64,000 nucleotides of DNA, taken from Phyllobates terribilis (taxonomy: Eukaryota). The position numbers and the translations under genes were made by a program. This document shows positions 2,951-64,000 of this stretch, piece after piece. Position 1 is the stretch's first letter, and each line of letters opens with the position of its first letter. The stretch spans positions 359,662,001 through 359,726,000 of the forward strand of contig NW_027362769.1 of NCBI RefSeq assembly GCF_046119375.1. Reading direction: 5' to 3'. The notes beneath the pieces were generated by a model. The model searched no databases and was not told where the DNA came from. It was given only the letters and a program-made list of their open reading frames with translations.

Positions 2951-3221
2951 CTGATAATACAAAGCAGGCCTGGTAATAACCCTATTATTACCCAGGGTGC
3001 CACTCACCACCAGGGCCGCTGGAAGAGCCGGGTAAATCACCTGGAAATGGTGCTATGATGAATGCACCATTTTCAGGGGTGGCTGCAGGCAGCGATTTTC
3101 AGCGTGGGGGCCAAGAACGCTTGGGCCTTACCATGCTGAAAATCCCAGCCCCCAGCTGCCTTGTTTTATCTGGCTGGTGATCAACATATGTCGGGAGCTG
3201 GGCAATGGGCATGATTATCAA

Positions 3222-3615
3222 ATAATATATACCTGACAGGAGCCCATAGATTCTGTTGGCTCCAATAATATATAACTTACAGGAGCCCATAGATTCTGCT
3301 GCCTCGAATAATATATACCTGACAGGAGCCCATAGATTCTGCTGCCTCCATTAATATATACCTGACAGGAGCCCATAGATTCTGCTGGCTCCAATAATAT
3401 ATACCTGACGGGAGCCCATAGATTCTGCTGGCTCCAATAATATATACCTGACAGGAGCCCATACATTCTCCTGCCTCCAATAATATATACCTGAAAGGAG
3501 CCCATAGATTCTGCTGCCTCCAATAATATATACCTGACAGGAGCCCATAGATTCTGCTGCCTCCAATAATATATACCTGACAGGAGCCCATAGGTTCTGC
3601 TCCCTCCAATAATAT
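3222..3615. repeat. 43-bp minisatellite, left part
   Basis: Unit CCAATAATATATACCTGACAGGAGCCCATAGATTCTGCTGCCT. Confidence 0.95.
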
Positions 3616-5628: not shown

Positions 5629-8600
5629 AATATATACCTGACAGGAGCCCATAGATTCTTCTGGCTCCAATAATATATACCTGACAAGAGCCCATAGATT
5701 CTGCTGGCTCCAATAATAAATACCTGACAGAAGCCCAAACATTCTGCAGGCTCCAATAATATATACCTGACAGGAGCCCATACATTCTCCTGCCTACAAT
5801 AATATATACCTGACAGGAGCCCATAGATTCTCCTGCCTCCAATAATATATACTTGGTAGAAGCCCATACATTCTGCTGGCTCTAATAATATATACCTGAC
5901 AGGAGCCCATAGATTCTGCTGCCTCCAATAATATATACCTGACAGGAGCCCATAGATTCTGCTGCCTCCAATAATATATACCTGATAGGAGCCCATACAT
6001 TCTCCTGCCTCCAATAATATATACCTGATAGGAGCCTATAGATTCTGCTGTCTCCAATAATATATACCTGACAGGAGACCATACATTCTCCTGCCTCCAA
6101 TAATATATACCTGACAGGAGCCCATACATTCTGCTGCCTCCAATAATATATACCTGGTAGGAGCCCATACATTCTCCTGCCTCCAATAATATATACCTGA
6201 CAGGAGCCCATAGATTCTGCTGCCTCCAATAATATATACCTGACAGGAGACCACACATTCTCCTGCCTCCAATAATATATACCTGACAGGAGCCCATAGA
6301 TTCTGCTGCTTCCAATAATATATACCTGGCAGGAGCCCATACATTCTCCTGCCTTCAATAATATATACCTGAAAGGAGTCCATAGATTCTCCTGCCTCCA
6401 ATAATATATACCTGACAAGAGCCCATACATTCTGCTGCCTCCAATAATATATACCTGGTAGGAGCCCATACATTCTCCTACCTCCAATAATATATACCTG
6501 ACAGGAGCCCATAGATTCTGCTGCCTCCAATAATATATACCTGACAGGAGTCCATACATTCTCCTGCCTCCAATAATATATACCTGACAGGAGCCCATAC
6601 ATTCTGCTGCCTCCAATAATATATACCTGACAGGAGTCCATACATTCTCCTGCCTCCAATAATATATACCTGACAGGAGCCCATAGATTCTGCTGCCTCC
6701 AATAATATATACCTGACAGGAGCCCATACATTTTCCTGCCTCCAATAATATATACCTGACAGGAGCCCATACATTCTGCTGCCTCCAATAATATATACCT
6801 GACAGGAGTCCATACATTCTCCTGCCTCCAATAATATATACCTGACAGGAGCCCAAAGATTCTCCAGCCTCCAATAATATATACCTGAAAGGAGTCCATA
6901 CATTCTCCTGCCTCCAATAATATATACCTGACAGGAGCCCAAAGATTCTCCAGCCTCCAATAATATATACCTGAAAGGAGTCCATACATTCTACTGCCTC
7001 CAATAATATATACCTGACAGGAGCCCATACATTCTCCTGCCTCCAATAATATATACCTAATATATACCTGACAGGAGCCCATAGATTCTGCTGCCTCCAA
7101 TAATATATACCTGACATGAGCCCATATACTCTGCTACCTCAAAAAATAAATACCTGACAGGAGCCTATAGATTCTGCTTCCTCCAATAATATATACCTGA
7201 CAGGAGCCCAAACATTCTGCTGTCTCCAATAATATATACCTGACAGGAGCCCAAAGATTCTGCTGCCTCCAATAATATATACCTGACAGGAGCCCATACG
7301 TTCTCCTGCCTCCAATATTATATACCTGGTAGGAGCCAATACATTCTCCTGCCTCCAATAATATATACCTGACAATATACCGACAGGAGCCCATAGATTC
7401 TCCTGCCTCCAATAATATATACCTGGTAGGAGCCCATACATCTGCTGGCTACAATCATATAAACCTGATAGGAGCCCATAGATTCTTCTGCCTCCAATAA
7501 TATATACCTTGTAGGAGCCCATGCATTCTCCTGCCTCCAATAATATATACCTGACAGGAGCCCATAGATTCTGCTGCATCCAATAATATATACCTGACAG
7601 GAGCCCATAGATTCTGCTGGCTCCAATAATATATACCTGACAGGAGCCCATAGATTCTGCTGCCTCCAATAATATATACCTGACAGGAGCCCATAGATTC
7701 TGCTGGCTCCAATAATATATACCTGACAGGAGCCCATAGATTCTGCTGCCTCCAATAATATATACCTGACAGGAGCCCATAGATTCTGCTGGATCCAATA
7801 ATATATACCTGACAGAAGCCCATAGATTCTGCTGCCTCCAATAAAATATACCTGACAGGAGCCCATAGAATCTGCTGCCTCCTATAATATACACCGGGTA
7901 GGAGCCCATATATTCTGCTGCCTCCAATAATATATACCTGACAGGAGCCCATACACTCTGCTGCTCCAATAATATATACCTGACAGGAGCCCATAAATTC
8001 TTCTGCCTCCAATAATTTATACCTGACAGGAGTCCATACATTCTCTTGCCTCCAATAATATATACCTGACAGGAGCCCATACATTCTCCTGCCTCCAATA
8101 ATATATACCTGACAGGAGTCCATACATTCTGCTGCCTCCAATAATATATACCTGACGGGAGCCCATACATTCTGCTGCCTCCAATAATATATACCTGACA
8201 GGAGCCCATAGATTCTGCTGCCTCCAATAATATATACCCGACAGGACCCATACATTCTGCTGCCTCCAATAATATATATCTGACAGGATCCCATACATTC
8301 TACTGCCTCCAATAATATATACCTGACAAGTCTAATACATTCTTCTGCCTCCAATAATATATACGTGACAGGATCCCATACATTCTGCTGCCTCCAATAA
8401 TATATACCTGACAGGAGCCCATAGATTCTGCTGCCTCCAATAATATATACCCGACAGGACCCATACATTCTGCTGCCTCCAATAATATATACCTGACAGG
8501 AGCCCATAGAGTCTGCTGCCTCCAATAATATATACCTGACAGGATCCCATACATTCTCTTGCCTCCAATAATATATACCTGACAGGAGCCCATACATACT

Positions 8601-9890
8601 GCTGCCTCCAATAATATATACCTGACAGGATCCCATACATTCTCTTGCCTCCAATAATATATACCTGACAGTAGCCCATACATTCTGTTCCCTCCAATAA
8701 TATATACCTGACAGGACCCATACATTTTGCTGCCTCCAATAATATATACCTGACAGGATCCCATACATTCTGCTGCCTCCAATAATATATACCTGACAGG
8801 AGCCCATAGAGTCTGCTGCCTCCAATAATATATACCTGACAGGAGCCCATAGATTCTGCTGCCTCCAATAATATATACCTGACAGGAGCCCATAGATTCT
8901 GCTGCCTCCAATAATATATACCTGACAGGAGCCCATACATTCTGCTGCCTCCAATAATATATACCTGACAGAAGCCCATAGATTCTACTGCCTTCAATAA
9001 TATATACCTGACAGGAGCCCATACATTCCCCTGCCTCCAATAATATATACCTGACAGGAGCCCATAGATTCTGCTGCCTCCAATAATATATACCTGACAG
9101 GAGCCCATAGATTCTGCTGCCTCCAATAATATATACTTGATAGGAGCCCATAGATTCTGCTGGCTCCAATAATATATACCTGACAGGAGCCCATAGATTC
9201 TGCTGCCTCCAATAATATATACCTGACAGAAGCCCATAGATTCTACTGCCTTCAATAATATATACCTGACAGGAGCCCATACATTCCCCTGCCTCCAATA
9301 ATATATACCTGACAGGAGCCCATACATTCTGCTGCCTCCAATAATATATACCTGACAGGAGCCCATACATTCTACTGCCTCCAATAATATATACCTGACA
9401 GGACCCATACATTTTGCTGCCTCCAATAATATTTACCTGACAGAAGCCCATAGATTCTACTGCCTTCAATAATATATACCTGACAGGAGCCCATACATTC
9501 CCCTGCCTCCAATAATATATACCTGACAGGAGCCCATAGATTCTGCTGCCTCCAATAATATATACCTGACAGGAGCCCATAGATTCTGCTGCCTCCAATA
9601 ATATATACTTGATAGGAGCCCATAGATTCTGCTTGCTCCAATAATATATACCTGACAGGAGCCCATAGATTCTGCTGCCTCCAATAATGTATAGCTGACA
9701 GAAGCCCATAGATTCTACTGCCTTCATTAATATATACCTGACAGGAGCCCATACATTCCCCTGCCTCCAATAATATATACCTGACAGGAGCCCATAGATT
9801 CTGATGCCTCCAATAATATATACCTGGTAGGAGCCCATACATTCTCCTGCCTCCAATAATATATTCCTGGTAGGAGCCCATAGATTCTGC
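5629..9890. repeat. 43-bp minisatellite, right part (~100 units)
   Basis: Same unit as 3222-3615; source of the many YILLEAAESMGSCQ ORFs. Confidence 0.95.
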
Positions 9891-9899
9891 TGCCGCTGC

Positions 9900-13406: not shown

Positions 13407-13572
13407 AGGTCCTGCACAGATTAAATGAGTCCTCTGCAGCAAATCATACAGTGGAGCAAGGATCATGTACACAGATAGATCTATATACCGTCTGGTACAC
13501 AGGTGTCAGCAGACCCTAGTGTGGACCATCGCCTGCTATCTGCGGTGCGGGCTCTTATGAGGAGGATGTGGT

Positions 13573-13588
13573 GGCTCTTAGAAGAGCC
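13573..13588 (-). terminator. Histone 3' stem-loop of the H2A pseudogene
   Basis: Minus strand GGCTCT-TCTA-AGAGCC, preceded by AAA and followed by ACCA. Confidence 0.9.
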
Positions 13589-13622
13589 TTTAGTTGTTCT
13601 GACAGATGTGGAGGAGCGGCGC

Positions 13623-15636
<2,014 letters not shown>

Positions 15637-15670
15637 TCTGCTTCGTCTGCTGCTCCGCCATCACCCCAAA

Positions 15671-15710
15671 GGCTCTTCTGAGAGCCACCACCGCGTCTAC
15701 ATCAGAGCTG
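15671..15710 (+). terminator. Histone stem-loop plus downstream element (H2B pseudogene)
   Basis: GGCTCT-TCTG-AGAGCC 15671-15686; CAGAGCTG at 15703-15710. Confidence 0.9.
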
Positions 15711-18700
15711 TGGCTGCTTCTGTGTTCTCTCCCGTCTCCCCGAGTTGTCTGGCCACATAGCCCGGGTCTCTGTCTAATGACAGGGTAAATAGCAGGTGGC
15801 CCAAGTAGAAGTGAAGGCTAAGGGCTAACGAAGAAGATGGCGAAAAAACTGGGGCTGCTTTTGGGTTCTCCTTCACAGCTCAGCACTTTCACCAATGCCC
15901 TTGTGATTTCAGATGGAAGTTCAGTGACTTATTTAAGCCCTTGCTCCTCAGATCTGACTCCTTTTCGTCTCATTCCTATTTTAGGAATTGATTCGGTTTA
16001 GTTTCTCTAAATAATGAAATTACTTCACTGTTTTATGAAAGGTGATTACATGAGATTGTGGTCGGTGGAGTTTATTAGTGATGAGCAGCATGCTCACCAC
16101 TATTCGTTACGAGCTCGAGATGCTCGTTGCTGGCGAGTATTTTTTGAATGTTCGGGAGCTTGAATCGCCGCCCCGCATGTTTGGCGCATAATATACAGCC
16201 AATTACCATGCAGGGGTTGCGTGACAGTCAATGTCATGTCATAGCCAAGTTGGCTGTGGCATTACAGTGACTGGCTGGTCGCACAGCGTCATCAGGTCTA
16301 TATCAGAGGTCTATATCAGACCTGGCGCCGCCATGCTTGTCACAGTCACTCCGGAATCAGACAGTGTAGGGAGAGCTGCTGCTGAGCTAGGGAGTAGTGA
16401 TGAGCGAGCACTAAAATGCTCGAGTACTCGTTGCTCGGGTCGAGCAAATTGGAATACTCGGGTGCTTTACCCGAGTAATGAGCCCAATGTAATTCTATGG
16501 AAAACTCAAGCATTTTTCACGCGGCTCCCCCCGGTGGTTTGCAGAGGGCCTAAAAATTGGCCAAATCGAACAGTGCTCAAATGACATGGGAACAGCATGG
16601 GGAAGACCCCTGGAAGCATTTCTGACTCCCAGGTCACTGCTGTCAACAACGTTGTCAGAGTATTACGCCACTTTTACGGATTCACAATAGAACATACAAA
16701 AACAAAAGCAAAATGCATTTTCCTGGGAAATATATTAAGGAACATCCTTTCCAGGGTAATGACTTGTATATAAGGCAAAATAAATAACCAAAACCAAAAA
16801 TACTCCTCCACACCTTGGGCTATATTCAAACATAACATTTTTTATGCGTTTTTGCACTTTTGCATTGCTTTCAACAAAGACAAATGCATTCACTGGGAAA
16901 TGTCATTTTAACATTTTACAATCTTATCTGGCCATGTGGTGTGTGACACATCATCAGACACATGCATACAGTGCTGAAAAGACATGGGAACAGCATGGGG
17001 AAGACCTCTGGAACCATTTCTGACTCCCAGGTCACTGCCTAAAAGTGTGCCCATCATAAGTAATAAGATGCCTCCCGCCATGCTCCTGTCGTTGCAGACT
17101 TGCAACAATCACCGTCCATGTCCTTGTCCCAGTGCAGTGTTCAGTTGTCCCTACCCCATTCCTTGGAATGCAAGCACAAGTATGCAGCCAGCCACCCACC
17201 CACCTACAGGCTGCAATACTATACTGCCAAATTTTTGACAGCTGCTTGCACTTGAAATGTGGCCTTTTAGGGTCGTGGAGGCGGATGCTTTTCATAACCT
17301 CATGCCGGCGTCAGCTGGGTGCTCATGCTTGGTCCCCAGCCACCACTATTTCTCCCGGTATCTTCTCCGCCTTCCACAAGCACGGGTCCCACAACATTAC
17401 CCGTGCCCTCCCCAGTGCACTTACTGGTAAAGACTGCCTACCCACAAACACGTGGACAGGTGAATGTGGCCAGGGATGGTACGGAGCCAGTCCACAGCTT
17501 TTTTTGCTGAGAGTTGTATTTAGCTCGGTGAAAGTACTGGCATAGAGGGAAACCGTATCTACTCCGGCTGTCATTTCTCCGCCACTAGGTTCCGCCCATT
17601 GTCACACACGACCATGCCTGGCTGTATTTTCAGTGGTGAGAGCCACAGATCAGGCTGCCGTGTTACAGCTTTCAACAACTCTGCAGCGCTGGGCGGTTTG
17701 TCAATTAAGCATTAAGCATGTTATCTTCAGCACAGCCTGTTGCCACTTGGCCAGGGCAGTGCTGCAGTGCTGTCAGCTTGTGACTGATGTAGTCATTTCG
17801 GAGATGGAGGAGGAGGTGCAGGAGCTGAGCAATGTGATTACATTGAGGTTAAATTAGTGACGCTGTTATTTATACTAAAGAAAGATCCTATTGTTTGGTT
17901 TTTTTACGTTATTTTTAAAGATAAATGCATTCACTGGGAAATGTCATTTTAACATTTTACAACCTTATCTGGCAATGTGGTGTGTGACACATCATCAGAA
18001 ACATACTGTTTTATTTATGAAGGAGGGACTCTGAAAGTCATAAAGCCTATTTTTATAGGGACATCAGACGGCCCTTACTATTCTTAAAAGGCCAGCAGTT
18101 GGCCCTCGCTATTGTTAGAGAGCCATCAGGCGGCTATGCGTTGTTGTTCCCATTATTAACAAGTGGGTCTCCTATACTGTTATTGCGTATCCAGTGACTG
18201 CAAGGGCTGCCAAAAATTTGGACGCAATCCAATACCCCTTTGAAGAGACATAGAGGAGGGTCTCAGTAAAAAAATGTTCCCATTATAAAGGAGCGGGTCT
18301 CCTATAGTGGTAATGCCCATGCTGTGACTGCAAGAGCTGCCAAAATTTGGGAAAAACCCCTCTAAGAATTTAAAGACACATAGAACAGGGCCACAGTAAC
18401 GACACATTCCATTTAGAAAGGAGACAGTCTGCTATACAGTTATAGGTTATGCAGTGAGTCCAATGGCTGACCAATTTTAGGAAAAACCCCACTAAGAATT
18501 TAAAGACACATAGAGCAGGGCCACAGTAACAAGGTACGACATGTACCCATTAGGAAGGAGAGGGTCTGCTATACAGTTATAGGGTATGCAGTGAGTCCAA
18601 CGGCTGACCAATTTTAGGAAAAAACCCACTAAGAATTTAAAGACACATAGAGCAGGGCCACAGTAACGACAAATTCCCATTAGAAAGGAGAAAGTCTACC

Positions 18701-27819: not shown

Positions 27820-28232
27820 CCTGCTCTTTATACTTTAAATGCTGCTCTATATACTGTACACACTGCTCTATATACTGTAAACGCTGCTCTATATACTGTA
27901 CACACTGCACTATACACTGTATATACTGCTCTATATACTGTACATACTGCTCTATATACTGTACACACTGCTCTATACATTGTATATACTACTCTATATA
28001 CTGTACACACTGCTCTATATACTGTCTGTAAACACTGAACTATATACTGTACACACTGCTCTATATACTGTACACACAGAACTATATACTGTACAGACTT
28101 CTCTATATACTGTACATACTGCTCTATATACTGTATACACTGCTCTATATACTGTACACACTGCTCTATATACTGTACAGACTGTTCTATATACTGTACA
28201 CACTGAACTATATACTGTACACGTTGCTCTAT
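27820..28232 (-). repeat. 21-bp minisatellite, reverse-complement copy of the family at 40.8-64 kb
   Basis: Unit CTGCTCTATATACTGTACACA is the reverse complement of TGTGTACAGTATATAGAGCAG. Confidence 0.9.
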
Positions 28233-28842: not shown

Positions 28843-28980
28843 AAAGCACAAGGGGAGAGCGGAGCTTCACTCGGGCTCAGCAGGGAGGAGGCGGGGCCTG
28901 TGCTCAGTGTCAGCCAATAGATGCTCAGGACGGTGCAGATCAGCAGCCAATCAGTGCGCAGTAAGCCTGTACATATAACA
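28843..28980 (+). promoter_or_regulatory. H1 promoter
   Basis: AC-box-like AAAGCACA 28843-28850, GC box GAGGCGGGG 28888-28896, CCAAT at 28914 and 28947, TATAA at 28974. Confidence 0.75.
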
Positions 28981-29049
28981 GGCGCCTCCAGCTCCGGCCT
29001 CAGTGTTTTCCTATCAGGAGATATTTGTGTTCTAGTTCCGCAGCACACG

Positions 29050-29706
29050 ATGGCCGAGACCGCACCAGCCGCCGCTCCCCCTCCTGCAGAACCGGCCGCC
29101 AAATCCAAGAAACAGCCGAAGAAATCCGCCGCCGGGGACGCCAAGAAAAGCAAGAATCCCTCCGGTCCCAGCGTCGCCGATCTGATCGTGAAAGCCGTGT
29201 CCGCCTCTAAGGAGCGCAGTGGGGTGTCTCTGGTCGCCCTGAAGAAGGCTCTGTCTGCCGGAGGATACGATGTAGAGAAGAACAACAGCCGCCTGAAGCT
29301 GGCCGTCAAGTCTCTGGTCACCAAGGGCGCCCTCCTCCAGGTGAAGGGCAGCGGCGCCTCCGGGTCCTTCAAGCTGAACAAGAAGCAGCAGGAGACTAAG
29401 GACAAAGCGGCCAAGAAGAAGTCAGCAGCTGCGGCCAAGCCCAAGAAACCCGCTGCAGCCAAGAAAGCCGCCAAGTCTCCTAAGAAGCCCAAGAAGGCTC
29501 CGACCGCGGCCAAGAAGAGCCCGAAAAAGGCCAAGAAGCCCGCAGCAGCTGCCAAGAAGGCGGCCAAGAGCCCCAAGAAGCCAAAGGCCGCTCCGAAGCC
29601 CAAGAAGGTGACGAAGAGTCCGGCTAAGAAAGCTGCTAAACCCAAAGCTGCCAAGAGTCCTGCTAAGAAGGCAGCTAAAGCCAAGAAGCCCGCAGCTAAG
29701 AAATAA
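29050..29706 (+). CDS. H1: Replication-dependent linker histone H1, 218 aa
   Basis: [11 protein letters not shown]..., globular domain (KERSGVSL...[17 protein letters not shown]...[12 protein letters not shown]), Lys/Ala/Pro tail with SPKK motifs. Intronless, followed by a stem-loop. Confidence 0.97.
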
Positions 29707-29736
29707 TCCAAAGCCGCCCTGTTATTACCCCACAAA

Positions 29737-29778
29737 GGCTCTTTTTAGAGCCACCACCTTGTCCCCGGCAGAGCTGTA
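29737..29778 (+). terminator. H1 3' stem-loop and histone downstream element
   Basis: GGCTCT-TTTT-AGAGCC 29737-29752; AGAGCTGTA 29770-29778. Confidence 0.95.
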
Positions 29779-31530
29779 TGATCAGTGCCACCACCTTGTC
29801 CCCGGCAGCGCTGTATGATCAGTGCCACCACCTTGTCCCCGGCAGAGCTGTATTATCAGAGCCACCACCTTGTCCCCTCCCTGCAGAGCTGTATGATAAG
29901 TGCCACCACCTTGTCCCCGGCAGCGCTGTATGATCAGTGCCACCACCTTGTCCCCGGCAGCGCTGTATGATCAGTGCCACCACCTTGTCCCCGGCAGCGC
30001 TGTATGATCAGTGCCACCACCTTGTCCCCGGCAGAGCTGTATGATCAGTGCCACCACTTTGTCCCCGGCAGAGCTGTATGATCAGTGCCACCACCTTGTC
30101 CCCGGCAGAGCTGTATGATCAGTGCCACCACCTTGTCCCCGGCAGAGCTGTATGATCAGTGCCACCACCTTGTCCCCGGCAGAGCTGTATGATCAGTGCC
30201 ACCACCTTGTCCCCGGCAGAGCTGTATTTTCAGTGCCACCACCTTGTCCCCGGCAGCGCTGTATGATCAGTGCCACCACCTTGTCCCCGGCAGAGCTGTA
30301 TGATCAGTGCCACCACCTTGTCCCCGGCAGAGCTGTATGATCAGTGCCACCACCTTGTCCCCGGCAGAGCTGTATGATCAGTGCCACCACCTTGTCCCCG
30401 GCAGAGCTGTATTTTCAGTGCCACCACCTTGTCCCCGCCAGAGCTGTATGATCAGTGCCACCACCTTGTCCCCGCCAGAGCTGTATGATCAGTGCCACCA
30501 CCTTGTCCCCGGCAGAGCTGTATGATTAGTGCCACCACCTTGTCCCCGGCAGAGCTGTATTTTCAGTGCCACCACCTTGTCCCCGGCAGAGCTGTATTTT
30601 CAGTGCCACCACCTTGTCCCCGGCAGAGCTGTATGATCAGTGCCACCACCTTGTCCCCGGCAGAGCTGTATGATCAGAGCCACCACCTTGTCCCCTCCCT
30701 GCAGAGCTGTATAATCAGTGCCATCATCTTGTCCCCGGCAGAGCTGTATGATCAGAGCCACCACCTTGTCCCCTGCAGAGCTGTATAATCAGTGCCATCA
30801 TCTTGTCCCCGGCAGAGCTGTATGATCAGTGCCACCACCTTGTCCCCTGCAGAGCTGTATAATCAGTGCCATCATCTTGTCCCCGGCAGAGCTGTATGAT
30901 CAGAGCCACCACCTTGTCCCCTGCAGAGCTGTATAATCAGTGCCACCACCTTGTCCCCGGCAGAGCTGTATAAGTGCCACCACCTTGTCCTCTGCAGAGC
31001 TGTATAATCAGTGCCACCACCTTGTCCCCGGCAGAGCTGTATAAGTGCCACCACCTTGTCCCCGGCAGAGCTGTATGATCAGTGCCACCACCTTGTCCCC
31101 GGCAGAGCTGTATGATCAGTGCCACCACCTTGTCCCCGGCAGAGCTGTATGATCAGAGCCACCACCTTGTCCCCGGCAGAGCTGTATGATCAGTGCCACC
31201 ACCTTGTCCCCGGCAGAGCTGTATGATCTGTGCTACCACCTTGTCCCCGGCAGAGCTGTATGATCAGTGCCACCACCTTGTCCCCTGCAGAGCTGTATGA
31301 TCAGTGCCACCACCTTGTCCCCGGCAGAGCTGTATGTTCAGTGCTACCACCTTGTCCCCGGCAGAGCTGTATGATCAGTGCCACCACCTTGTCCCCTGCA
31401 GAGCTGTATGATCAGTGCCACCACCTTGTCCCCGGCTGAGCTGTATTATCAGTGCCATCATCTTGTCCCCGGCAGAGCTGTATGATCAGTGCCATCATCT
31501 TGTCCCCGGCAGATCTGTATGATCAGTGCC
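29750..31530 (+). repeat. 37-bp minisatellite (~48 units) built from the H1 3'-processing region
   Basis: Unit GCCACCACCTTGTCCCCGGCAGAGCTGTATGATCAGT; the first unit overlaps the right arm of the stem-loop. Confidence 0.95.
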
Positions 31531-32019
31531 CGTATATCCTGCCGCTTCTAGATTATAGTGTGTACAGGGAGCTGCTCCAGTGTTATAATGAATAAGCTTT
31601 TCCCCACATCTCCGCATAGAGCTGCGCTGTGTCCCGATCACACCAGTGCAGGTGACCGATCAGTGTAATCAATGGAGGGAAGGGGCCGATGTCCTACAGA
31701 AATCTAATTCTTACATCATTCTAATCAATCACCACTTGTAACCTGCGTCTTTATTAGTGAAAGGATTAGTGTGCGGTTATTACTTCGATGTGAGAATTGG
31801 AGAACCAGTGATTTGACTGATGATAGAGTAGACCCTGTACAGCTCCGTGTACTGGTGACATAGAAGAACAGTGACGACGGCGGCTCCTGCTGTAGAAGCC
31901 GCATGTAGACATGGTGTGACCCTGTGCCAGTATCCGCAGCCAGAAAAGAGAGAACAGAGACCATGCCCCTCTTTTTGAGGGCGGGATTAATGGGCGTTGC
32001 GATGATTTTGTGAATAATG

Positions 32020-32593
<574 letters not shown>

Positions 32594-32622
32594 ATCCGTC
32601 CTACACGTCTGACTATAACAAA

Positions 32623-32665
32623 GGCTCTTTTCAGAGCCACCAAATCCTCCATAATAACGAGCTGA
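32623..32665 (+). terminator. H3 3' stem-loop and downstream element
   Basis: GGCTCT-TTTC-AGAGCC 32623-32638; GAGCTG near 32660. Confidence 0.93.
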
Positions 32666-34460: not shown

Positions 34461-34982
<522 letters not shown>

Positions 34983-40751: not shown

Positions 40752-40785
40752 NNNNNTCCGTCTGCTGCTCCGCCATCACCCCAAA

Positions 40786-40801
40786 GGCTCTTCTAAGAGC
40801 C
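40786..40801 (+). terminator. H2B 3' stem-loop
   Basis: GGCTCT-TCTA-AGAGCC followed by ACCA. Confidence 0.93.
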
Positions 40802-40816
40802 ACCACCCTGTCTACA

Positions 40817-43106
40817 TAGAGCAGCCTGTACAGTATATAGAGCTGCGTGTATAGTATATAGAGTAGTGTGTATAGTATATAGAACTGCCTGTACAGTATA
40901 TAGAGCAGTGTGTACAGTATATAGAACTGCCTGTACAGTTTATAGAGCAGGGTGTACAGTATATAGAGCTGCCTGTACAGTATATAGAGCAGTGTGTATA
41001 GTATATAGAGCAGAGTGTACAGTATATAGAGCTGCCTGTACAGTATATAGAGCTGTGTGTATAGTATATAGAGTAGTGTGTACAGTATATAGAGCAGCCT
41101 GTACAATATATAGAGCAGCCTGTACAGTATATAGAGCAGTGTGTACAGTATATAGAGCAGTGTGTACAGTATATAGAGCAGCCTGTACAGTATATAGAGC
41201 AGTGTGTACAGTATATAGAGCAGTCTGTATAGTATATAGAGCAGTGTGTATAGTATATAGAGCAGCCTATACAGTATATAGAGTAGTGTGTATAGTATAT
41301 AGAGCAGTGTGTACAGTATATAGAGTAGTGTGTATAGTATATAGAGCAGCCTATACAGTATATAGAGCAGTGTGTACAGTATATAGAGTAGTGTGTATAG
41401 TATATAGAGCAGTGTGTACAGTATATAGAGCAGTTTGTACAGTATATAGAGCAGCCTGTACAGTATATAGAGCAGTGTGTACAGTATATAGAGCAGTGTG
41501 TATAGTATATAGAGCAGTGTGTACAGTATATAGAGTAGTGTGTATAGTATATAGAGCAGCCTATACAGTATATAGAGCAGTGTGTACAGTATATAGAGTA
41601 GTGTGTATAGTATATAGAGCAGTGTGTACAGTATATAGAGCAGTGTGTACAGTATATAGAGCAGCCTGTACAGTATATAGAGCAGTGTGTACAGTATATA
41701 GAGCAGTGTGTATAGTATATAGAGCAGCCTATACAGTATATAGAGCAGTGTGTACAGTATATAGAGCAGTGTGTACAGTATATAGAGTAGCCTGTACAGT
41801 ATAAAGAGCTGCCTGTACAGTATATAGAGCAGCCTATACAGTATATAGAGCAGTGTGTACAGTATATAGAGCAGTGTGTATAGTATATAGAGCAGCCTGT
41901 ACAGTATATAGAGCTGCCTGTACAGTATATAGAGCAGTGTGTACAGTATATAGAGCAGTGTGTACAGTATATAGAGCAGCCTGTACAGTATATAGTGCAG
42001 TGTGTACAGTATATAGAGCAGTGTGTATAGTATATAGAGCAGCCTGTACAGTATATAGAGCTGCGTGTATAGTATATAGAGTAGTGTGTATAGTATATAG
42101 AGCAGCCTATACAGTATATAGAGCAGTATGTACAGTATATAGAGCAGTGTGTACAGTATATAGAGCTGTGTGTTCAGTATATAGAGCTGCCTGTACAGTA
42201 TATAGAGCTGTGTGTATAGTTTATAGAGTAGCGTGTACAGTATATAGAGCAGCCTGTACAATATATAGAGCAGTGTGTACAGTATATAGAGCAGCCTGTA
42301 CAGTATATAGGGCAGCCTATACAGTATATAGAGCAGTGTGTACAGTATATAGAGTAGTGTGTATAGTATATAGAGCAGCCTATACAGTATATAGAGCAGT
42401 GTGTACAGTATATAGAGTAGTGTGTATAGTATATAGAGCAGCCTATACAGTATATAGAGCAGTGTGTACAGTATATAGAGTAGTGTGTATAGTATATAGA
42501 GCAGCCTATACAGTATATAGAGCAGTGTGTACAGTATATAGAGTAGTGTGTATAGTATATAGAGCAGCCTATACAGTATATAGAGCAGTGTGTACAGTAT
42601 ATAGAGCAGTGTGTACAGTATATAGAGCAGCGTGTACAGTATATAGAGCAGCCTGTACAGTATGTAGAGCAGTGTGTACAGTATATAGAGCAGCCTGTAC
42701 AGTATATAGAGCAGTGTGTATAGTATATAGAGCAGCCTGTACAGTATATAGAGCAGCGTGTACAGTATATAGAGCAGTGTGTACAGTATATAGAGCAGTG
42801 TGTACAGTATATAGAGCTGCCTGTACAGTATATAGAGCAGCGTGTGCAGTATATAGAGCAGTGTGTATAGTATATAGAGCTGCCTGTACAGTATGTAGAC
42901 CAGTGTGTACAGTATATAGAGCAGCCTGTACAGTATATAGAGCAGGGTGTACAGTATATAGAGCAGAGTGTACAGTATATAGAGCAGCCTGTACAGTATA
43001 TAGAGCTGCCTTTACAGTATATAGAGCTGTGTGTACAGTATATAGAGCTGCCTGTACAGTATATAGAGCTGCCTGTACAGTATATAGAGCAGTGTGTACA
43101 GTATAT
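40817..43106 (+). repeat. 21-bp minisatellite, first block (~109 units)
   Basis: Units TGTGTACAGTATATAGAGCAG and CCTGTACAGTATATAGAGC(A/T)G; starts 15 nt after the H2B stem-loop. Confidence 0.97.
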
Positions 43107-43289: not shown

Positions 43290-45302
43290 CACCCCCAAGA
43301 GACAAAGTCGCGATAGTAACCCCAGACACCCACAAGTACGCAAGAAAACCAGCTCCTCAAATTTTTTTCAGAGGGCACAAAAAACAAACGTAAGAGGGGA
43401 GGTAGAGGAGGGCAACTCTCCAAAAAGAAAAAGGCAGATACAGAAGAGATAAACCAAAAAGCCGACACTATCTTCAATCTCAGTAAACATACCCTAAAAC
43501 CAAACGAAATCAACCTCCTAACTAAAGGTCTTAAATATGCCCCCTCCACAGGATTCAATAAATTTCAAGCTTTCATTGGAGTCAAACAGTTTATGCGAAA
43601 ACTAGCACTCAAAAAATACTACCTGAAACATCAGGACCGGGGGCACATAAATGAACCTAGAAACTCACTCACTTTGAAATATGCCCACACCAACTTAAAA
43701 ACCAAATCCAAATTCCATCCATTAAACGAATACTCATCTGCACTCGAAAGTTTTCAAAACAATGTCATCTCAGATATCCGTAAATTAAGCCACAAAAAAT
43801 GTAACAAATTCCAATACAACTTTAACGCCTCTGAGAAGAAAGCAATATATATCTTACAGAAAAATCAGAACATAATTATCCGTCCAGCTGATAAAGGAGG
43901 TGGTATAGTTATACTGGATCTAGAACAATATCAATCAGAAACAAACAGACTACTAAGTGACACAAGAACATACAATACTATGAGGGAGGACCCCACAGAT
44001 ATGTACCTAAAAGAACTAAAAACACTAACTACCAAAGGACTAGATAAAGGCTTCCTTACGAAACAGGAGTTTGAATACATCACTATCTCCCACCCACGTC
44101 TTGCAACATTTTATTATCTACCAAAAATACATAAGTCACTCTCCCATCCTCCAGGCAGACCTATCATCTCAGGTATCCAATGCCTAACATCAAATCTATC
44201 CAGATTTGTGGATAAACACTTACAAGACCTAGTACCCCTTTTGCCGACATATTTAAAAGACAGTCAACATGTACTTCAGCTTTTACAAAAAATCAAATGG
44301 CATGACAATTTCATCCTAGGCACCCTGGACATCTCGTCCTTATACACCGTGATTCAGCATAATGCGGGCTGCGACGCAGCCACACATTTTCTTTTGAAAC
44401 AAAACAAACTACCTAAAGAACAAATAATGTTCATGAAGGAATGTATGAAGTTCATACTGACGCATAATTATTTTAAACACGATAAACTTTTCTACACACA
44501 ACAATGGGGCACAGCAATGGGTACTAGATTTGCCCCAAGCTATGCCAATCTATACGTTGGCAAATGGGAGGAGTTAGCTATCCACCCAGGCGGCACACTC
44601 AGACCTAACTTGGTATTTTGGCATAGATTTATTGACGACGTACTTTTTATCTGGTCTGGTGACCAAGAATCCCTAGACTCCTTTATCAGGGAGATCAATA
44701 TCAATAACTTTTTCTTGGAATTTACCTCCAACATAAGCCAAAAACAGGTAAACTTCTTAGATCTCAACATATATATCCAAGATCAAAAAATCCATACAAA
44801 AACATATATGAAGCCAACGGACTCAAATAGCTTCATCTCTCTGGACAGCTGTCACCTCCCCAGCTGGCTGTTAAACATCCCACGCAGTCAATACATGAGA
44901 TTATATAGAAATTGCTCCAACACTGGGGACTTCAACGAAGAAGCCATACAATTAACAAATAAATTTTTAGAAAAAGGTTACAATCCACAATTTTTACAAA
45001 AAGTGAAAAATCAGATTCAAACTATACCCAGAGATAACCTCCTCAAGAACAGCACCACAAAAATTAATGCCACTGACCCTACAACACAACCAGATATCCC
45101 TATCATAACTCAATACAACTCCAATACATATTTATTAAGAAAAATAATTTCAAAACACTGGCATATCCTTCACGATGACAAAACAATAGGCGACCTTATT
45201 CCACCAAAACCAAGATTCATCTATAGGAAAGCAAAAAACCTAGGGAACCTCATCGCACCAACAGTTCGCAATCCTCAAATCATTAATCAACCCACACTCA
45301 TT
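43290..45302 (+). CDS. Penelope-like reverse transcriptase (5' part of the interrupted ORF)
   Basis: Frame open from 43290: KRKRGGRGG, IFNLS, IRPADKGGG, GRPIIS, LDISSLYT, GTAMGTRFAPSYANL, RFIDD, FLDL. First in-frame ATG at 43593. Confidence 0.88.
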
Positions 45303-46775
45303 AACCCCTTAATAACATCTGACGTACTAATACGCGTCTGTGCCCTGGGACTTAAGAGCCAGACCCGTATTAGTACGTCATCGCGATCGCGCGCGCACAC
45401 AGGCTGTGCGGGCGCGATCGCCGCCGGGTGTCAGCTGATTGTCACAGCTGACACCCGGTATTATGTGCAGGGAGCGGTCCTGCACCGCTCCCAGCACATT
45501 AACCCCCGCGATGCTGCGATCGAAGTCGATCGAAGTCGATCGCGGCATTGCGGGGGCAAGGGGAGGTGATCGGCGATACTCACCACCTCTTCCGGCTTCC
45601 AGCGCAGTCTGCAAAGGCTTACCGGGTGTTGCCATGACGACCCGATGTTGTCATGACAACATCCGGGTCACCAGAGAGCAGGAAGATTGCTTGGACATGC
45701 GCAGTGCATCTCCAAGCAATCTTCACACTGTGCATTTCTGACAGCCTTCATGGCATAGGGATGGTGCTCCATTCCTGTGCCATGCAGGCGATCAGAAAAA
45801 AAAAGTGAAAGTCTCAGAGTGGGACAAAGTAATAAAGTGTATAAACTGTGTGAAAGTGGAAAAAAAAAAAATGTGCAAAAATATTCTAAAAAAATAAAAA
45901 AAATAATACACCAAAAATAAAAATATAATGTACCCATCAATAAATATTATTATAAAAAAAACAAAAAAAAAAACAGTAAAAGTACACATATTTGGTATCA
46001 CCGCGTCCGGAAAAACCTGACCTATAAAACTGTCCCACTAGTTAACCCCTTCAGTGAACACGGTAAAAAAAAAAAAAAACGAAGCAAAAAACAATGCTTT
46101 ATCACCATACCGCCAAACAAAAAGTGGAATAACACGCGATCAAAAAGACGCATATAAATAAAAATGATACCGCTGAAAACGTCATCTCGTCCCGCAAAAA
46201 ACAAGCTGCCATACAGCTCCATCAGCTGAAAAATAAAAAAGTTATAGCTCTCAGAATAAAGCGATACTAAAAAATATTTTTTTCTATAAAATAGCTTTTA
46301 TTGTGTATAAGCGCCAAAACATAGAAAAATGATACAAATGTGGTACCGCTGTAAACGTACTGACCCGAAGAATAAAGCTACCTCATCAATTTTACCACAC
46401 GCGGAACAGAATAAAAAAAAAAAAAAAAACAATTCCTGAATTGTTGGTTTTTGTTTATTCTGCCTCCCAAAAATCGGAATAGAAAGCGATCAAAAAATGT
46501 CACGTGCCTGAGAATGGCACCAATAACAACGTCAAGTCATCCCGGAAAAAACGAGCCGTCACATGACTGTCTGCCAAAATCTGGAAAAATTATAGCTCTC
46601 AAAATATGGCGATGCAAAAACTAGATTTTACAAAAAATGCGTCTTTTAGTGTGTGACAGCTGTCAGTCATAAAAACCCCATATGATTCTGGCATTGCTGT
46701 AATCACACCGACCCGAAGAATAAAGTCGTCTAATCACTTATACCGCACAAGGAACGGCGTCAAAAATAAACTCTT

Positions 46776-46915
46776 GGGTTAGGATTGGGCTAGGGTTAGG
46801 GCTGGGTTTGGGGCTAGGGTTGTGCTGGGGCTAGGGTTGTGCTGGGGCTAGGGTTGTGCTGGGGCTAGGGTTGTGCTGGGGCTAGGGTTGTGCTAGGGTT
46901 AGGGCTGGGGTTGGG
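46776..46915 (+). repeat. Degenerate telomere-like (TTAGGG/CTAGGG) tract inside the element
   Basis: GGGTTAGG..GGGCTAGGGTTAGGG and repeated GCTGGGGCTAGGGTTGT. Confidence 0.7.
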
Positions 46916-46957
46916 ATTTTTTTCAAAAGTAAGAAAAAAAGATGACGATATGGCGAC

Positions 46958-47253
46958 TAGTGTTGAGAGCAAGTGCTCGCTACTTGAGTTTGCATCGGGT
47001 GCTCTGGTATGCATTGAGTATCGTGGGTATTTGAGTGACATGCTCGAGTCTCTGCCCCATATGCTTCGCGGCCAAAAAACTTTACGGGGATTGCCTGCTA
47101 TGCACGAGCGATCCCCGCATGTTTTTTTTTTGGGTGTCTAATAACCGTGAAACATGCGGAGCAGGGACTCGAGCATGTCACTCGAGCACACGCTGTACAT
47201 GGTGCATACCTGAGTACCCGATGCAAACTCAAGTAGCGAGCACTTGCGCTCAA
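46958..47253. mobile_element. ~295-bp MITE nested in the TTAA element
   Basis: ~40-bp inverted ends GCAAGTGCTCGCTACTTGAGTTTGCATCGGGT and ACCCGATGCAAACTCAAGTAGCGAGCACTTGC. Left end TAGTGTTGAG; right end truncated. Confidence 0.7.
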
Positions 47254-47349
47254 GAATAATGACAACTTATTCAATATGATGACCTAATGTAAACAAATTC
47301 TGTGCCGTACCTCTGGGTTCAAAATGTTCACTATACACCTTAATAAAAT

Positions 47350-48965
47350 CCTTGAGGGGTATAGTTTCCAAAATGGGGACACTTGTGGGGGAGCTCCACT
47401 GTTTAGGCACATCACAGGCTCTCCAAACGCGACATGGTGTCCGCTAACAAATTGAATGGAAAATCGGCTCAAATTGTTAGCGGACGCCATGTTGCGTTTG
47501 GAGAGCCCCTGTGTGCCCAAACATTGGAGCTCCCCCACAAGTGACCCCATTTTGGAAACTAGACCCCCCAAGGCACCTATCTAGATGCATAGTGAGCACT
47601 TGGAATCCCCAGGTGCTTCACAAATTGATTTGTAAAAATGAAAAAGTGAAAAAAAAATCACTTTTTCATTTTTATGAATCAATTTGTGAAGCACCTGGGG
47701 TTCCAAGTGCTCACTATGAATCTAGATAGGTGCCTTGGGGGGTCTAGTTTCCAAAATGGGGTCACTTGTGGGGGAGCTCCAATGTTTGGGCACGCAGGGA
47801 CTCTCTAAATGCAACATGGTATCCGCTAACAAATTGAATGGAAAATCGGCTCAAATTGTTAGTTGACACCACATTGCGTTTGGAGAGCCCCTCTGTGCCC
47901 AAACTTTGGAGCTCCCCCACAAATGACCCCATTTTGGAAACTAGACCCCCCAAGGCACCTTTCTAGATGCATAGTGAGCACTTGAAACCCCCAGGTGCTT
48001 CACAAATTGATTCGTAATAATGAAAAAGTGAAAAAAAAAACACTTTTTCATTTTTATGAATCAATTTGTGAAGCACCTGGGGTTCCAAGTGCTCACTATG
48101 AATCTAGATAGGTGCCTTGGGGGGTCTAGTTTCCAAAATGGGGTCACTTGTGGGGGAGCTCTAATGTTTGGGCACACAGGGACTCTCCAAATGCAACATG
48201 ATATCCGCTAACAAATTGTCGGCTCAAATTGTTAGCGGATATCATGTTGCATTTGGAGAGTCCCTGTGTGCCTAAACATTGGAGCTCCACCACAAGTGAC
48301 CCCATTTTGGAAACTAGACCCCCCAAGGCACCTATCTAGATGCATAGTTAGCACTTGTAACTCCAGGTGCTTCACAAATTGATTCATAAAAATGAAAACG
48401 TGTTTTTTTTTTCACTTTTTCATTATTACAAATCAATTTGTGAAGCACCTGGGGGTTTAAAGTGCTCACAATGCATCTAGAAAGGTGCCTTGGGGGGTCT
48501 AGTTTCCAAAATGGGGTCACTTGTGGGGGAGCTCCAAAGTTTGGGCACAGAGGGGCTCTCCAAACGCAATGTGGTGTCCGCTAACAATTTGAGCCGATTT
48601 TCCATTCAATTTGTTAGCGGATACCATGTTGCATTTAGAGAGTCCCTGTGTGCCCAAACATTGGAGCTCCCCCACAAGTGACCCCATTTTGGAAACTAGA
48701 CCCCCCAAGGCACCTATCTAGATGCATAGTGAGCAGTTGGAACCCCCAGGTGCTTCACAAATTGATTCGTAACAATGAAAAAGTGTTTTTTTTTTCACTT
48801 TTTCATTTTTACGAATCAATTTGTGAAGCAGCTGGGGGTTGCAACTGCTCACTATGCATCTAGATGGGTGCCTTGGGGGGTCTAGTTTCCAAAATGGGGT
48901 CACTTGTGGGGGAGCTCCAATGTTTGGGCACACAGGGGCTCTCTAAACGCAACATGGTGTCCGCT
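47350..48965. repeat. Array of ~380-bp palindromic units
   Basis: CCAAAATGGGGTCACTTGTGGGGGAGCTCC alternates with its reverse complement GGAGCTCCCCCACAAGTGACCCCATTTTGG about every 380 bp. Confidence 0.85.
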
Positions 48966-49794
48966 AATTATTCAAGCAAATTTTACAATCAAAAAGTCAA
49001 ATGGCGCTCCTTCCCTTCCGAGCCCTACAGTGCGCCCAAACAGTGTTTTTTCCCCAAATATTGGGTATCTGCGTGCCCAGGGGAAATTGCACAACAAATT
49101 TTGCGGTCCATTTTTTCTTGTTACTCCTGTGAAAATAAAAAAAATTGGGTCTAAAGTAATATTTTTGTGAAAAAAGTTAAATGTTCATTTTTTTCTTCCA
49201 CATTCAAAAAATTCCTATGAAGCACCTGAAGGGTTAATAAAGTTCTTGAATGTGGTTTTGAGCACCTTGAGGGGTGCAGTTTTTAGAATGGTGTCACTTT
49301 TGGGTATTTTCTGTCATAAAGACCTCTCAAAGTGACTTCAAATGTGATGTGGTCCCTAAAAAAATGGTTTTGTAAATTTTGTTGGAAAAATGTGAAATCG
49401 CTGGTCAACTTTTAACCCTTATAGCTCCCTAACAAAAAAAAATTTTTGTTCCAAAATTGTGCTGATGTAAAGTAGACATGTGGGAAATGTTATTTATTAA
49501 CTCTTTTGTGTGACATATCGCTCTGATTTCAGGGCTTAAAAATTCAAATTTTGAAAATTGCAAAATTTTCAAAATTTTCGCCAAATTTCCATTTTTTTCA
49601 CAAATAAACGCAAGTGTTATCAAAGAAATTTTTCCACAATCATGAAGTACAATATGTCACGAAAAAACAATCTCAGAATCAGGGGGATCCGTTGAAGCGT
49701 TCCAGAGTAATTACCTCATAAAGTGACAGTGGTCAGAATTGTAAAAATTGGCCCGGTCATTAACGTGCAAACCACCCGCGGGGCTTAAGGTGTT

Positions 49795-50256
49795 AAAGAA
49801 ACTGTTGGTTTTTATCCCTGTAATAAATGTGCAGCATGCAAGAAGCTGCACACTAAAAAACAAAAAATAATCACGGAAGACCAAACCACCTACAAAATCT
49901 CAGACTTCATTACTTGCAACACCGATGGCGTCATCTACAGCCTCCGATGTCCATGCAACAAACTTTATATAGGTAGAACCAAACGCCCCCTACAAGTGCT
50001 CATAAATGAACATCTGCGCAATATTTCCAAAAAATTTGACGGACACCCTCTATCTATACATTACTCCGAAAAACATGGAGGTTCCATTAAGGGCACTACC
50101 ATCACAGGCCTACAGAAGGTCCACAAACAATGGCGCAAATGGGACTATCTAAAACAAATGTCCAGGGTTGAAAGCAAGTGGATATTCAACCTGGACACAT
50201 TAAAACCAAAGGGACTCAATTCTGAGATTGAGTTATTTGCTTTCAATGATGACTAA
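49795..50256 (+). CDS. Penelope-like GIY-YIG endonuclease (3' part of the interrupted ORF)
   Basis: KETVGFYPCNKCAAC...GVIYSLRCPCNKLYIGRTKR...EHL...HY...RVESKWIFNLDTLKPKGLN; no stops. Confidence 0.9.
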   Translation, partial: KETVGFYPCNKCAACKKLHTKKQKIITEDQTTYKISDFITCNTDGVIYSLRCPCNKLYIGRTKRPLQVLINEHLRNISKKFDGHPLSIHYSEKHGGSIKGTTITGLQKVHKQWRKWDYLKQMSRVESKWIFNLDTLKPKGLNSEIELFAFNDD

Positions 50257-51982: not shown

Positions 51983-54900
51983 CTACAGTATATAGAGCAG
52001 CCTGTACAGTATATAGAGCTGCCTGTACAGTATATAGAGCAGTGTGTACAGTATATAGAGCAGCCTGTACATTATATAGAGCAGTGTGTACAGTATATAG
52101 AGCTGCCTGTACAGTATATAGAGCAGTGTGTACAGTATAAAGAGCTGCCTGTACATTATATAGAGCAGTGTGTACAGTATATAGAGCAGTGTGTACAGTA
52201 TATAGAGCTGCCTGTACAGTATATAGAGCAGTGTGTACAGTATATAGAGCAGCATGTACAGTATATAGAGAAGCCTGTACAGTATATAGAGCAGTGTGTA
52301 CAGTATATAGAGCAGTGTCTATAGTATATAGAGCAGCCTGTACAGTATATAGAGCAGTGTGTACAGTATATAGAGCAGTGTGTATAGTATATAGAGCTGC
52401 CTGTACAGTATATAGAGCAGCCTGTACAGTATATAGAGCAGTGTGTGCAGTATATAGAGCAGCCTGTACAGTATATAGAGCAGCATGTACAGTATATAGA
52501 GCTGCCTGTACAGTATATAGAGCAGCGTGTACAGTATATAGAGCAGCCTATACAGTATATAGAGCAGTGTGTACAGTATATTGAGCTGCTGTACAGTATA
52601 TAGAGCAGTGTGTACAGTATATAGAGCTGCCTGTACAGTATATAGAGCAGTGTGTACAGTATATAGAGCAGCCTATACAGTATATAGAGCAGTGTGTACA
52701 GTATATAGAGCTGCCTGTACAGTATATAGAGCAGCGTGTACAGTATATAGAGCAGCCTATACAGTATATAGAGCTGTGTGTACAGTATATAGAGCAGCCT
52801 GTACAGTATATAGAGCAGCGTGTACAGTATATAGAGCAGCCTGTACTGTATATAGAGCAGTGTGTACAGTATATAGAGCTGCCTGTACAGTATATAGAGC
52901 AGTGTGTACAGTATATAGAGCAGTCTGTACAGTATATAGAGCTGCCTGTACAGTATATAGAGCAGCCTGTAAATTATATAGAGCAGCCTGTACAGTATAT
53001 AGAGCAGCCTGTACAGTATATAGAGCAGTGTGTACAGTATATAGAGCAGCATGTACAGTATATAGAGCAGTGTGTACAGTATATAGAGCAGTGTCTATAG
53101 TATATAGAGCAGCCTGTACAGTATATAGAGCAGTGTGTACAGTATATAGAGCAGTGTGTATAGTATATAGAGCTGCCTGTACAGTATATAGAGCAGCCTG
53201 TACAGTATATAGAGCAGCGTGTGCAGTATATAGAGCAGCCTGTACAGTATATAGAGCAGCATGTACAGTATATAGAGCAATGTGTACAGTATATAGAGCT
53301 GCCTGTACAGTATATAGAGCAGCGTGTACAGTATATAGAGCAGCCTATACAGTATATAGAGCAGTGTGTACAGTATATAGAGCAGCGTGTACAGTATATA
53401 GAGCAGCCTGTACAGTATATAGAGCAGTGTGTACAGTATATACAGCAGTCTGTATAGTATATAGAGCTGTCTGTACAGTATATAGAGCAGCCTGTACAGT
53501 ATATAGAGCAGAGTGTACAGTATATAGAGCAGCCTGTACAGTATATAGAGCTGCCTGTACAGTATATAGAGCAGTGTGTACAGTATATAGAGCAGCCTGT
53601 ACAGTATATAGAGCTGCCTGTACAGTATATAGAGCAGCCTGTACAGTATATAGAGCTGCCTGTACAGTATATAGAGCAGGGTGTACAGTATATAGAGCAG
53701 CGTGTACAGTATATAGAGCAGTGTGTACAGTATATAGAGCAGTCTGTACAGTATATAGAGCAGCCTGTACATTATATAGAGCAGTGTGTACAGTATATAG
53801 AGCAGTGTGTACAGTATATAGAGCAGCCTGTACAGTATATAGAGCAGTGTGTATAGTATATAGAGCAGCCTGTACAGTATATAGAGCTGCCTGTACAGTA
53901 TATAGAGCAGTGTGTACAGTATATAGAGCTGCCTGTACAGTATATAGAGCAGTGTGTACAGTATATAGAGCAGCCTGTACAGTATATAGAGCAGTGTGTA
54001 CAGTATATAGAGCAGCCTGTACAGTATATAGAGCAGTGTGTACAGTATATAGAGCAGTGTGTACAGTATATAGAGCTGCCTGTACAGTATATAGAGCAGT
54101 GTGTACAGTATATGGACCTGCCTGTACAGTATATAGAGCAGTGTGTACAGTATATAGAGCAGTGTGTACAGTATATAGAGCTGCCTGTACAGTATATAGA
54201 GCAGGGTGTACAGTATGTAGAGCAGCCTGTACAGTATATAGAGCAGTGTGTACAGTATATAGAGCTGTGTGTACAGTATATAGAGCAGTGTGTACAGTAT
54301 ATAGAGCTGCCTGTACAGTATATAGAGCAGGGTGTACAGTATATAGAGCAGCCTGTACAGTTTATAGAGCAGTGTGTATAGTATATAGAGCAGTCTGTAC
54401 AGTATATAGAGCAGTGTGTTCAGTATATAGAGCAGTGTGTACAGTATATACAGCAGTGTGTACAGTATATAGAGCAGTATGTACAGTATATAGAGCAGTG
54501 TGTACAGTATATACAGCAGTGTGTACAGTCTATAGAGCAGTATGTACAGTATATAGAGCTGCCTGTACAGTATATAGAGCAGTGTGTACAGTATATAGAC
54601 CTGCCTGTACAGTATATAGAGCAGGGTGTACAGTATATAGAGCAGTGTGTACAGTATATAGAGCAGCCTGTACATTATATAGAGCAGTGTGTACAGTATA
54701 TAGAGCTGCCTGTACAGTATATAGAGCAGTGTGTACAGTTTATAGAGCAGCGTGTACAGCATATAGAGCAGACTGTACAGTATATAGAACAGTGTGTACA
54801 GTATATAGAGCAGCCTGTACAGTTTATAGAGCAGTGTGTATAGTATATAGAGCAGTCTGTACAGTATATAGAGCAGTGTGTACAGTATATAGAGCAGTAT

Positions 54901-63900: not shown

Positions 63901-64000
63901 GAGCTGCCTGTACAGTATATAGAGCAGTGTGTACAGTATATAGAGCAGCCTTTACAGTTTATAGAGCAGTGTGTACAGTACATAGAGCTGCCTGTACAGT
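51983..64000 (+). repeat. 21-bp minisatellite, second block (>12 kb, ~570 units, runs off the window)
   Basis: Same unit as 40817-43106; shows higher-order structure. Confidence 0.98.

Follow-up and report, generated by a model that had tools for sequence, protein, structure and literature searches.

A probably neutral minisatellite, apparently derived from the 3' processing signal of a histone H1 gene, in a poison frog histone cluster

Two described amphibian systems come closest to the arrangement reported here. In the newt Notophthalmus, histone gene clusters lie within satellite 1 and, on lampbrush loops, their transcription reads through (Diaz et al. 1981; Gall et al. 1981; Stephenson et al. 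1981; cited in PMC5615363 and PMC13525598). In hyloid frogs, the PcP190 satellite is derived from 5S rDNA, has reported transcripts, and is shared across frog species (PMC11675491). Like PcP190, the 37-bp array described here, which lies next to a histone H1 gene, appears to be a satellite that grew out of part of a functional multicopy gene and is common to several frog species. The source differs, however, being an RNA gene body for PcP190 and a 37-bp cis-acting 3' processing signal here, and PcP190 is a dispersed family with a unit of ~190 bp, whereas the H1 array adjoins its parent gene. The locus resembles the newt type in that an amphibian histone cluster is immediately flanked by a sense-direction tandem satellite, and here a 21-bp satellite also brackets a quintet of histone genes. 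To our knowledge, newt satellite 1 is not derived from a processing signal and, unlike in the newt type, no contig among those listed here runs from H1 into the array. With ordinary minisatellites the array shares head-to-tail units, block-wise spread of variants and higher-order periods, the sole difference being the identity of the amplified sequence. We found no description of a satellite built from the histone downstream element in the literature, of which our coverage was incomplete, and a satellite whose unit is a complete cassette of cleavage site plus U7 site seems previously undescribed.

The window, that is, the whole 64-kb stretch of DNA that was analyzed, contains a histone cluster of a dendrobatid (poison) frog, with the following genes:
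About 13.5-15.8 kb, divergent strands: H2A/H2B pair, the second such pair in the window
29050-29706, + strand: histone H1 coding sequence, an intact ORF of 218 aa
32183-32593, + strand: histone H3 gene (ORF), with a Histone3 stem-loop at 32618-32663
34671-34982, + strand: histone H4 (ORF)
40053-39643, - strand: histone H2A (ORF)
From 40371, + strand: histone H2B (ORF), partly masked with N

The H1 protein is 94% identical to the 'histone H1.01-like' protein of Ranitomeya variabilis, its homologues carry Pfam domain PF00538, and the exact protein has a sole record, in assembly GCA_046119375.1. RNA contigs place the 5' end of H1 near 29002-29010, ~25-30 nt 3' of a CATATAA motif. The next gene downstream of the array is H3, on the same strand and across a gap of 652 bp, with no AATAAA or ATTAAA between the end of the array and H3. 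Tandem repeats also occur elsewhere among the histone genes, with 46-bp and 103-bp minisatellites at 14002-14383, in the shared promoter region of the divergent H2A/H2B pair (13500-15800).

Between H1 and H3, the features of the processing signal and of the array are the following:
29737-29752, + strand: H1 stem-loop GGCTCT-TTTT-AGAGCC (Rfam Histone3), the sole such hairpin in the region
29753-29757, + strand: ACCA(C), the expected H1 pre-mRNA cleavage site, with ACCA at 29753-29756
29770-29778, + strand: first copy of AGAGCTGTA, which is the histone downstream element of H1 itself, 17 nt 3' of the stem
29750-31530, + strand: 37-bp minisatellite of 48 units plus a terminal GCC, unit GCCACCACCTTGTCCCCGGCAGAGCTGTATGATCAGT
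30679-31046, + strand: sub-block of alternating units with a two-unit higher-order period of about 74 bp
31528-31536, + strand: distal edge AGT/GCC followed by unique CGTATATCC, the array ending on the partial unit GCC

The first unit of the array belongs to the 3' processing signal of H1 itself. The Rfam Histone3 model matched positions 29732-29777 with 31.8 bits (E=1e-6), slightly below its gathering score of 34, and the 6-bp stem of the H1 stem-loop was seen in the minimum free energy (MFE) fold. The position of cleavage 3' of the histone stem is established processing knowledge (PMC7026596), and we infer that H1 pre-mRNA is cleaved at ACCA(C), which a 13-nt spacer separates (counted from ACCA) from the first AGAGCTGTA. 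Compared with the canonical system of histone downstream element (HDE) and U7, unit 1 is complete, with stem-loop, ACCA, spacer and purine-rich U7-complementary core in native order and spacing, and the later units likewise repeat the cleavage-site context and the core. The difference is that units 2-48 are without a stem-loop and hence without a site for SLBP, such that the placement of an HDE, about 10-20 nt past the cleavage site that follows a histone stem-loop, is found in unit 1 only. We know of no histone pre-mRNA with 48 downstream elements, as opposed to one per gene.

Tandem Repeats Finder reported the array at 29750-31530 with a period of 37, 48.1 copies, 93% matches and a score of 3063, and parsing yielded 48 head-to-tail units, most of them 37 bp long (44 units), with two units of 41 bp and two of 34 bp. 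The array starts with the GCC that closes the H1 hairpin, i.e. the last three bases of its right arm, and each unit comprises ACCA, the spacer and the downstream element. A first, sequence-only reading had described the unit as the H1 signal from the right-arm GCC through ACCA to the downstream element, and both the parsing and the Histone3 match bear this out. Unit 1 equals the array consensus at 37/37 positions. The same reading had counted ~48 U7 sites; the number of units agrees, but AGAGCTGTA is exact in only 41/48, being changed to AGCGCTGTA in five units, to TGAGCTGTA in one and to AGATCTGTA in one. All 41 copies of this 9-mer in the window lie inside the array, against a chance expectation of 1.46, a 28-mer of the unit gave 46 matches where 0 were expected by chance, and the 37-bp unit does not occur in the window outside the array. 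That no unit rebuilds the left arm of the hairpin had also been claimed, and this stands, GGCYCT being absent from the array, yet the full right arm AGAGCC followed by ACCA is restored at five unit junctions. At E-values up to 10, the Histone3 model had no match in the units after the first. The two edges of the array, TAGA/GCC on the proximal and AGT/GCC on the distal side, form an imperfect direct repeat AG(A/T)GCC, 37 bp apart.

A pseudo stem-loop, GGCA..CTG/CAG..TGCC, was considered across unit junctions before ACCA and dropped, the MFE of four units being weaker than that of 199/200 shuffles and the Histone3 model giving no match. The same comparison indicates that four consensus units fold less than shuffles (z=+2.28, with 199/200 shuffles more stable), and the motifs of the array are thus predicted to be accessible if the array is transcribed. 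On both strands, one of the three frames of the consensus unit is interrupted by a stop, and hence such arrays yield no callable ORFs.

Pairing with U7 was evaluated with the mouse/human U7 5' end (PMC7026596) in place of the frog's own U7 in all duplex energies, and no U7 gene was found within the 64-kb window. The other five histone genes of the window carry a U7-complementary element containing AGAGC or GAGC, 17 to 23 nt past the stem, and these elements suggest that the frog U7 is like the mammalian one. AGAGCTGTA pairs with the mammalian U7 5' end over 9 bp, at -14.0 kcal/mol, in agreement with the earlier proposal that the downstream element is complementary to the U7 5' end. About 95% of random 45-nt windows drawn from the same 64 kb pair more weakly (mean -8.8, sd 2.6, 5th percentile -13.0, 1st percentile -15.0). 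Among the other genes, the corresponding values were -19.1 kcal/mol for the first copy of H2B, -11.3 kcal/mol for H2A, -10.5 kcal/mol for H3 and -9.1 kcal/mol for H4. As the elements of H3, H4 and H2A (-9.1 to -11.3) pair no more strongly than that of H1, H1 is in no visible need of reinforcement. Each intact unit is, by these predictions, a moderate U7 site, equal to the H1 gene's own. In the seven non-exact units out of 48, the duplex is weakened to between -7.3 and -9.5 (AGATC variant -7.3 kcal/mol, AGCGC variant -9.5 kcal/mol), save for a TGAGC variant at -14.1.

In mammalian extracts, substrates without a stem-loop were cut in the absence of SLBP only when given a strong U7 duplex, of 15 bp (PMC7026596). 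Since units 2-48 have no stem-loop to bring in SLBP and only 9 bp of pairing, they should be weak binders of U7 and poor substrates for cleavage.

Variation among the units offers a view of how they are maintained. It had been set out beforehand that the U7-pairing motif should vary less than the rest of the unit, and this expectation failed: variable sites make up 3/9 of the motif and 13/28 of the rest (Fisher p=0.70), of the 37 circular 9-mers in the unit, the motif ties for the 5th to 7th lowest variant count, and fewer variants have accumulated in the spacer CTTGTCCCC than in the motif (2 variant cells vs 7). Counting individual cells, variants were fewer in the motif (7/432 vs 56/1344, p=0.011), but cells are not independent, and this deficit was traced to a single hotspot at unit positions 31-37. 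A motif-breaking A>C change, whose duplex of -9.5 kcal/mol is about the background mean of -8.8, has been amplified and now sits in five gene-proximal units (2, 5, 6, 7 and 14). Hence AGAGCTGTA is not specially protected within the array, which at a unit identity of 93% is too young for a sensitive selection test.

The distribution of the variants is that of block-wise growth. Unit variants are arranged in runs or alternate, with units 26-35 alternating between 5C>T,8C>T and 18G>T,31G>A and between lengths of 34 bp and 37 bp. Over the whole array, the similarity of units at lag 2 exceeded that in all 2000 permutations, and at lag 4 as much similarity was reached in 9/2000. The spread of variants in multi-unit blocks, runs and alternation points to growth by unequal exchange. 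Tandem arrays of about 290 bp or more make up 39% of the window, and the birth of an array is therefore commonplace in this region.

The array was also sought in sequencing runs. For organism A, a share of 0.23-0.30 of the array words was present in 8 DNA runs, which came from two studies, and a share of 0.06-0.12 in RNA-labelled runs. The share was 0.14-0.16 in runs labelled as organisms D and E, and 0.06 in those labelled as organism F.

Near-identical array 31-mers occur in runs labelled with four other organisms (B, D, E and F). The repeat family is common to several labelled species and, given these 31-mers, has persisted across species; this cross-species picture is drawn from word shares and one contig placed on the window.

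For transcripts, contigs of four RNA-labelled or untyped runs were placed on 28850-29900, i.e. on H1 and the first four units. H1 was covered from 29002/29010 to 29696/29719 at 99-100% identity, with a depth of 19-47 for the H1 mRNA and of 0 for the stretch of its promoter. Contigs of array sequence only (59-67 nt, depth 13-68) were found in X1 and X2, both from organism A, and in X5, from organism B, and the dominant array contig of X1 is a 36-bp form of the unit (depth 19.9 of 26). The fourth run, X15, a library of unknown type, contains H1 mRNA and no array words. Over the bin 29714-29749, which covers the last part of the 3'UTR and the greater part of the stem-loop, depth was 0 in X1, 0 in X5, 0.52 in X15 and 4.54 in X2; in X15 the contig stops at 29718, and the depth in X2 comes from a contig ending at 29719 that belongs to a paralogue diverging thereafter. 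This expressed H1 paralogue is the same as the window copy to 29719 and then has a different 3'UTR. H1 read-through RNA that enters the array, as had been envisaged, found no backing: none of the contigs listed for the four runs bridges H1 and the array, an absence that, in contigs, is weak evidence. Slight DNA carry-over and low-level read-through alike would give array-only contigs of the depth observed.

Taken together, we consider it probable that the array is a minisatellite derived from a gene signal, the 3' processing signal of a replication-type H1 gene, and most likely neutral. Neutral slippage had been one of several possibilities raised at the outset, and is favored by the variant blocks and the unprotected motif. 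The first duplication would have occurred by slippage between two near-identical hexamers, AGAGCC, which is the hairpin's right arm, and AGTGCC, 37 bp further on. The duplicated 37 bp would begin with the final three bases of the stem-loop, take in ACCA, the spacer and the element that pairs with U7, and end at the nearby AGTGCC. Later growth proceeded by unequal exchange of blocks of one, two or three units, of which the variant pattern is the record. Unit 1 alone would do the work of the H1 processing signal, and units 2-48 would be part of the fragment downstream of the cut, with no role under selection. The downstream product of histone cleavage is normally degraded. Any read-through transcript would offer the U7 snRNP extra 9-bp sites, which would be weak without SLBP.

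The main alternative is that the array is at work as a multi-site U7 array, where H1 transcripts that escape cleavage, or read-through of the lampbrush type in oocytes, would expose dozens of accessible sites for U7 pairing and so keep U7 snRNP at the histone locus, or give cleavage and Pol II termination repeated chances ahead of the H3 promoter, which lies 650 bp on. Several features of the locus would fit such a role. The cleavage context CCACCA is kept in every unit at its native distance from the element, most motifs are intact (41/48) with a duplex that outdoes about 95% of the random background, array RNA is predicted to be poorly structured, and the stretch from the array to H3 has no poly(A) signal. 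Array words occur in RNA-labelled libraries, the depth of the array-only contigs, comparable to that of H1 mRNA while the promoter stretch has none, would fit transcription, and both U7-rich bodies at amphibian oocyte histone loci (PMC12046345) and newt read-through into satellite (PMC5615363) are described. However, the motif shows no excess conservation and a motif-breaking variant has been amplified, no contig among those listed joins H1 to the array, and run X15 has H1 mRNA without array words. Moreover, 9 bp without SLBP falls far under the 15-bp duplex that worked without a stem-loop (PMC7026596), and H1 alone has such an array even though its element is not the weakest. We therefore regard a working array as unlikely. 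A particular form of it, in which H1 read-through RNA with tens to hundreds of U7-pairing sites would serve, in oocytes or rapidly cycling embryonic cells, as a multivalent scaffold at the histone locus body or as a zone of repeated cleavage and termination, appears quite improbable. The roles first suggested from sequence, as a concentrator of U7, a fail-safe site or a sponge, thus gain no support from the motif, which is no better kept than its surroundings, from the amplified variant, or from the contigs.

The array may instead act at the level of DNA, independently of U7, as a block that binds proteins, spaces the H1 and H3 transcription units or forms a boundary between them, and it does sit between two same-strand genes. 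Nothing in the unit is like a known binding site, among those testable, and on one contig of Ranitomeya imitator the distance from H1 start to H3 end is 1979 bp, versus 3544 bp here, which by gene coordinates alone leaves room for ~6 units. We consider a role of this kind very unlikely. An even smaller probability is given to array RNA acting as a regulator that titrates scarce U7 snRNP and thereby lowers or times the production of histone mRNA. U7 is reported to number no more than a few hundred copies in a mammalian cell (PMC5054213), and the 36-bp form of the unit dominates array contigs in X1, but DNA carry-over would produce just such a dominance of the commonest genomic variant, and the points raised against a working U7 array apply equally here. 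Finally, false expansion or misplacement of the repeat is extremely improbable despite the error-prone assembly of long tandem repeats, as the array contains many ordered, locus-specific variants and its words occur in other organisms and in 8 DNA runs of two studies, so that the array is real DNA and not an assembly artefact.

The array shows that satellites can arise from a cis-acting signal for RNA processing, as well as from RNA gene bodies and transposons, for which cases are known. Neutral or not, the locus offers a natural experiment on whether downstream U7 sites affect histone 3' processing, termination and the assembly of the locus body in vivo. If the reading as a scaffold or termination zone were true, the satellite would be an RNA-processing element.

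Other tandem repeats of the window also touch on histone genes. The 3' flank of the second H2B (40781-40830) matches that of the first copy (15668-15712) through the stem-loop, ACCA and '...GTCTACAT(C)AGAGC', and then passes directly into a 21-bp satellite at 40816-43106. As the flank continues there as satellite, a second histone gene runs into a tandem array exactly at the U7-pairing core. The own element of this second H2B is replaced by weakly pairing satellite, and the best U7 duplex within 45 nt of its stem, -11.2 kcal/mol, lies in a later unit. The 21-bp satellite (ATAGAGCAGTGTGTACAGTAT) is found at 27821-28232 (inverted), 40816-43106 and 51984-64000; it lies on both sides of the H1-H3-H4-H2A-H2B quintet, in opposite orientations, and takes up the final 12 kb of the window at least, and none of its other edges touches a histone 3' end. 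It was considered as a second array of U7 sites and rejected, its duplex of -10.9 kcal/mol being within about one sd of background (-8.8, sd 2.6). The best ungapped match between the 21-bp and 37-bp units covers 13/18 positions (TAGAGCAGTGTGTACAGT vs CAGAGCTGTATGATCAGT), and was reached by 14/1000 shuffles at length 18, 153/1000 at length 14 and 120/1000 at length 21, such that a common origin of the two units in the histone downstream region is suggestive only.

Further repeats are associated with reverse transcriptases. A 43-bp array at 3221-3615 (9 copies) and 5629-9894 (99 copies) flanks reverse-transcriptase-like ORFs at 3715-5558, and may be the tandem tail of a retroelement. Within 43290-50256, a Penelope-like reverse transcriptase ORF (43593-45569) is accompanied by a 382-bp tandem array at 47350-48967.
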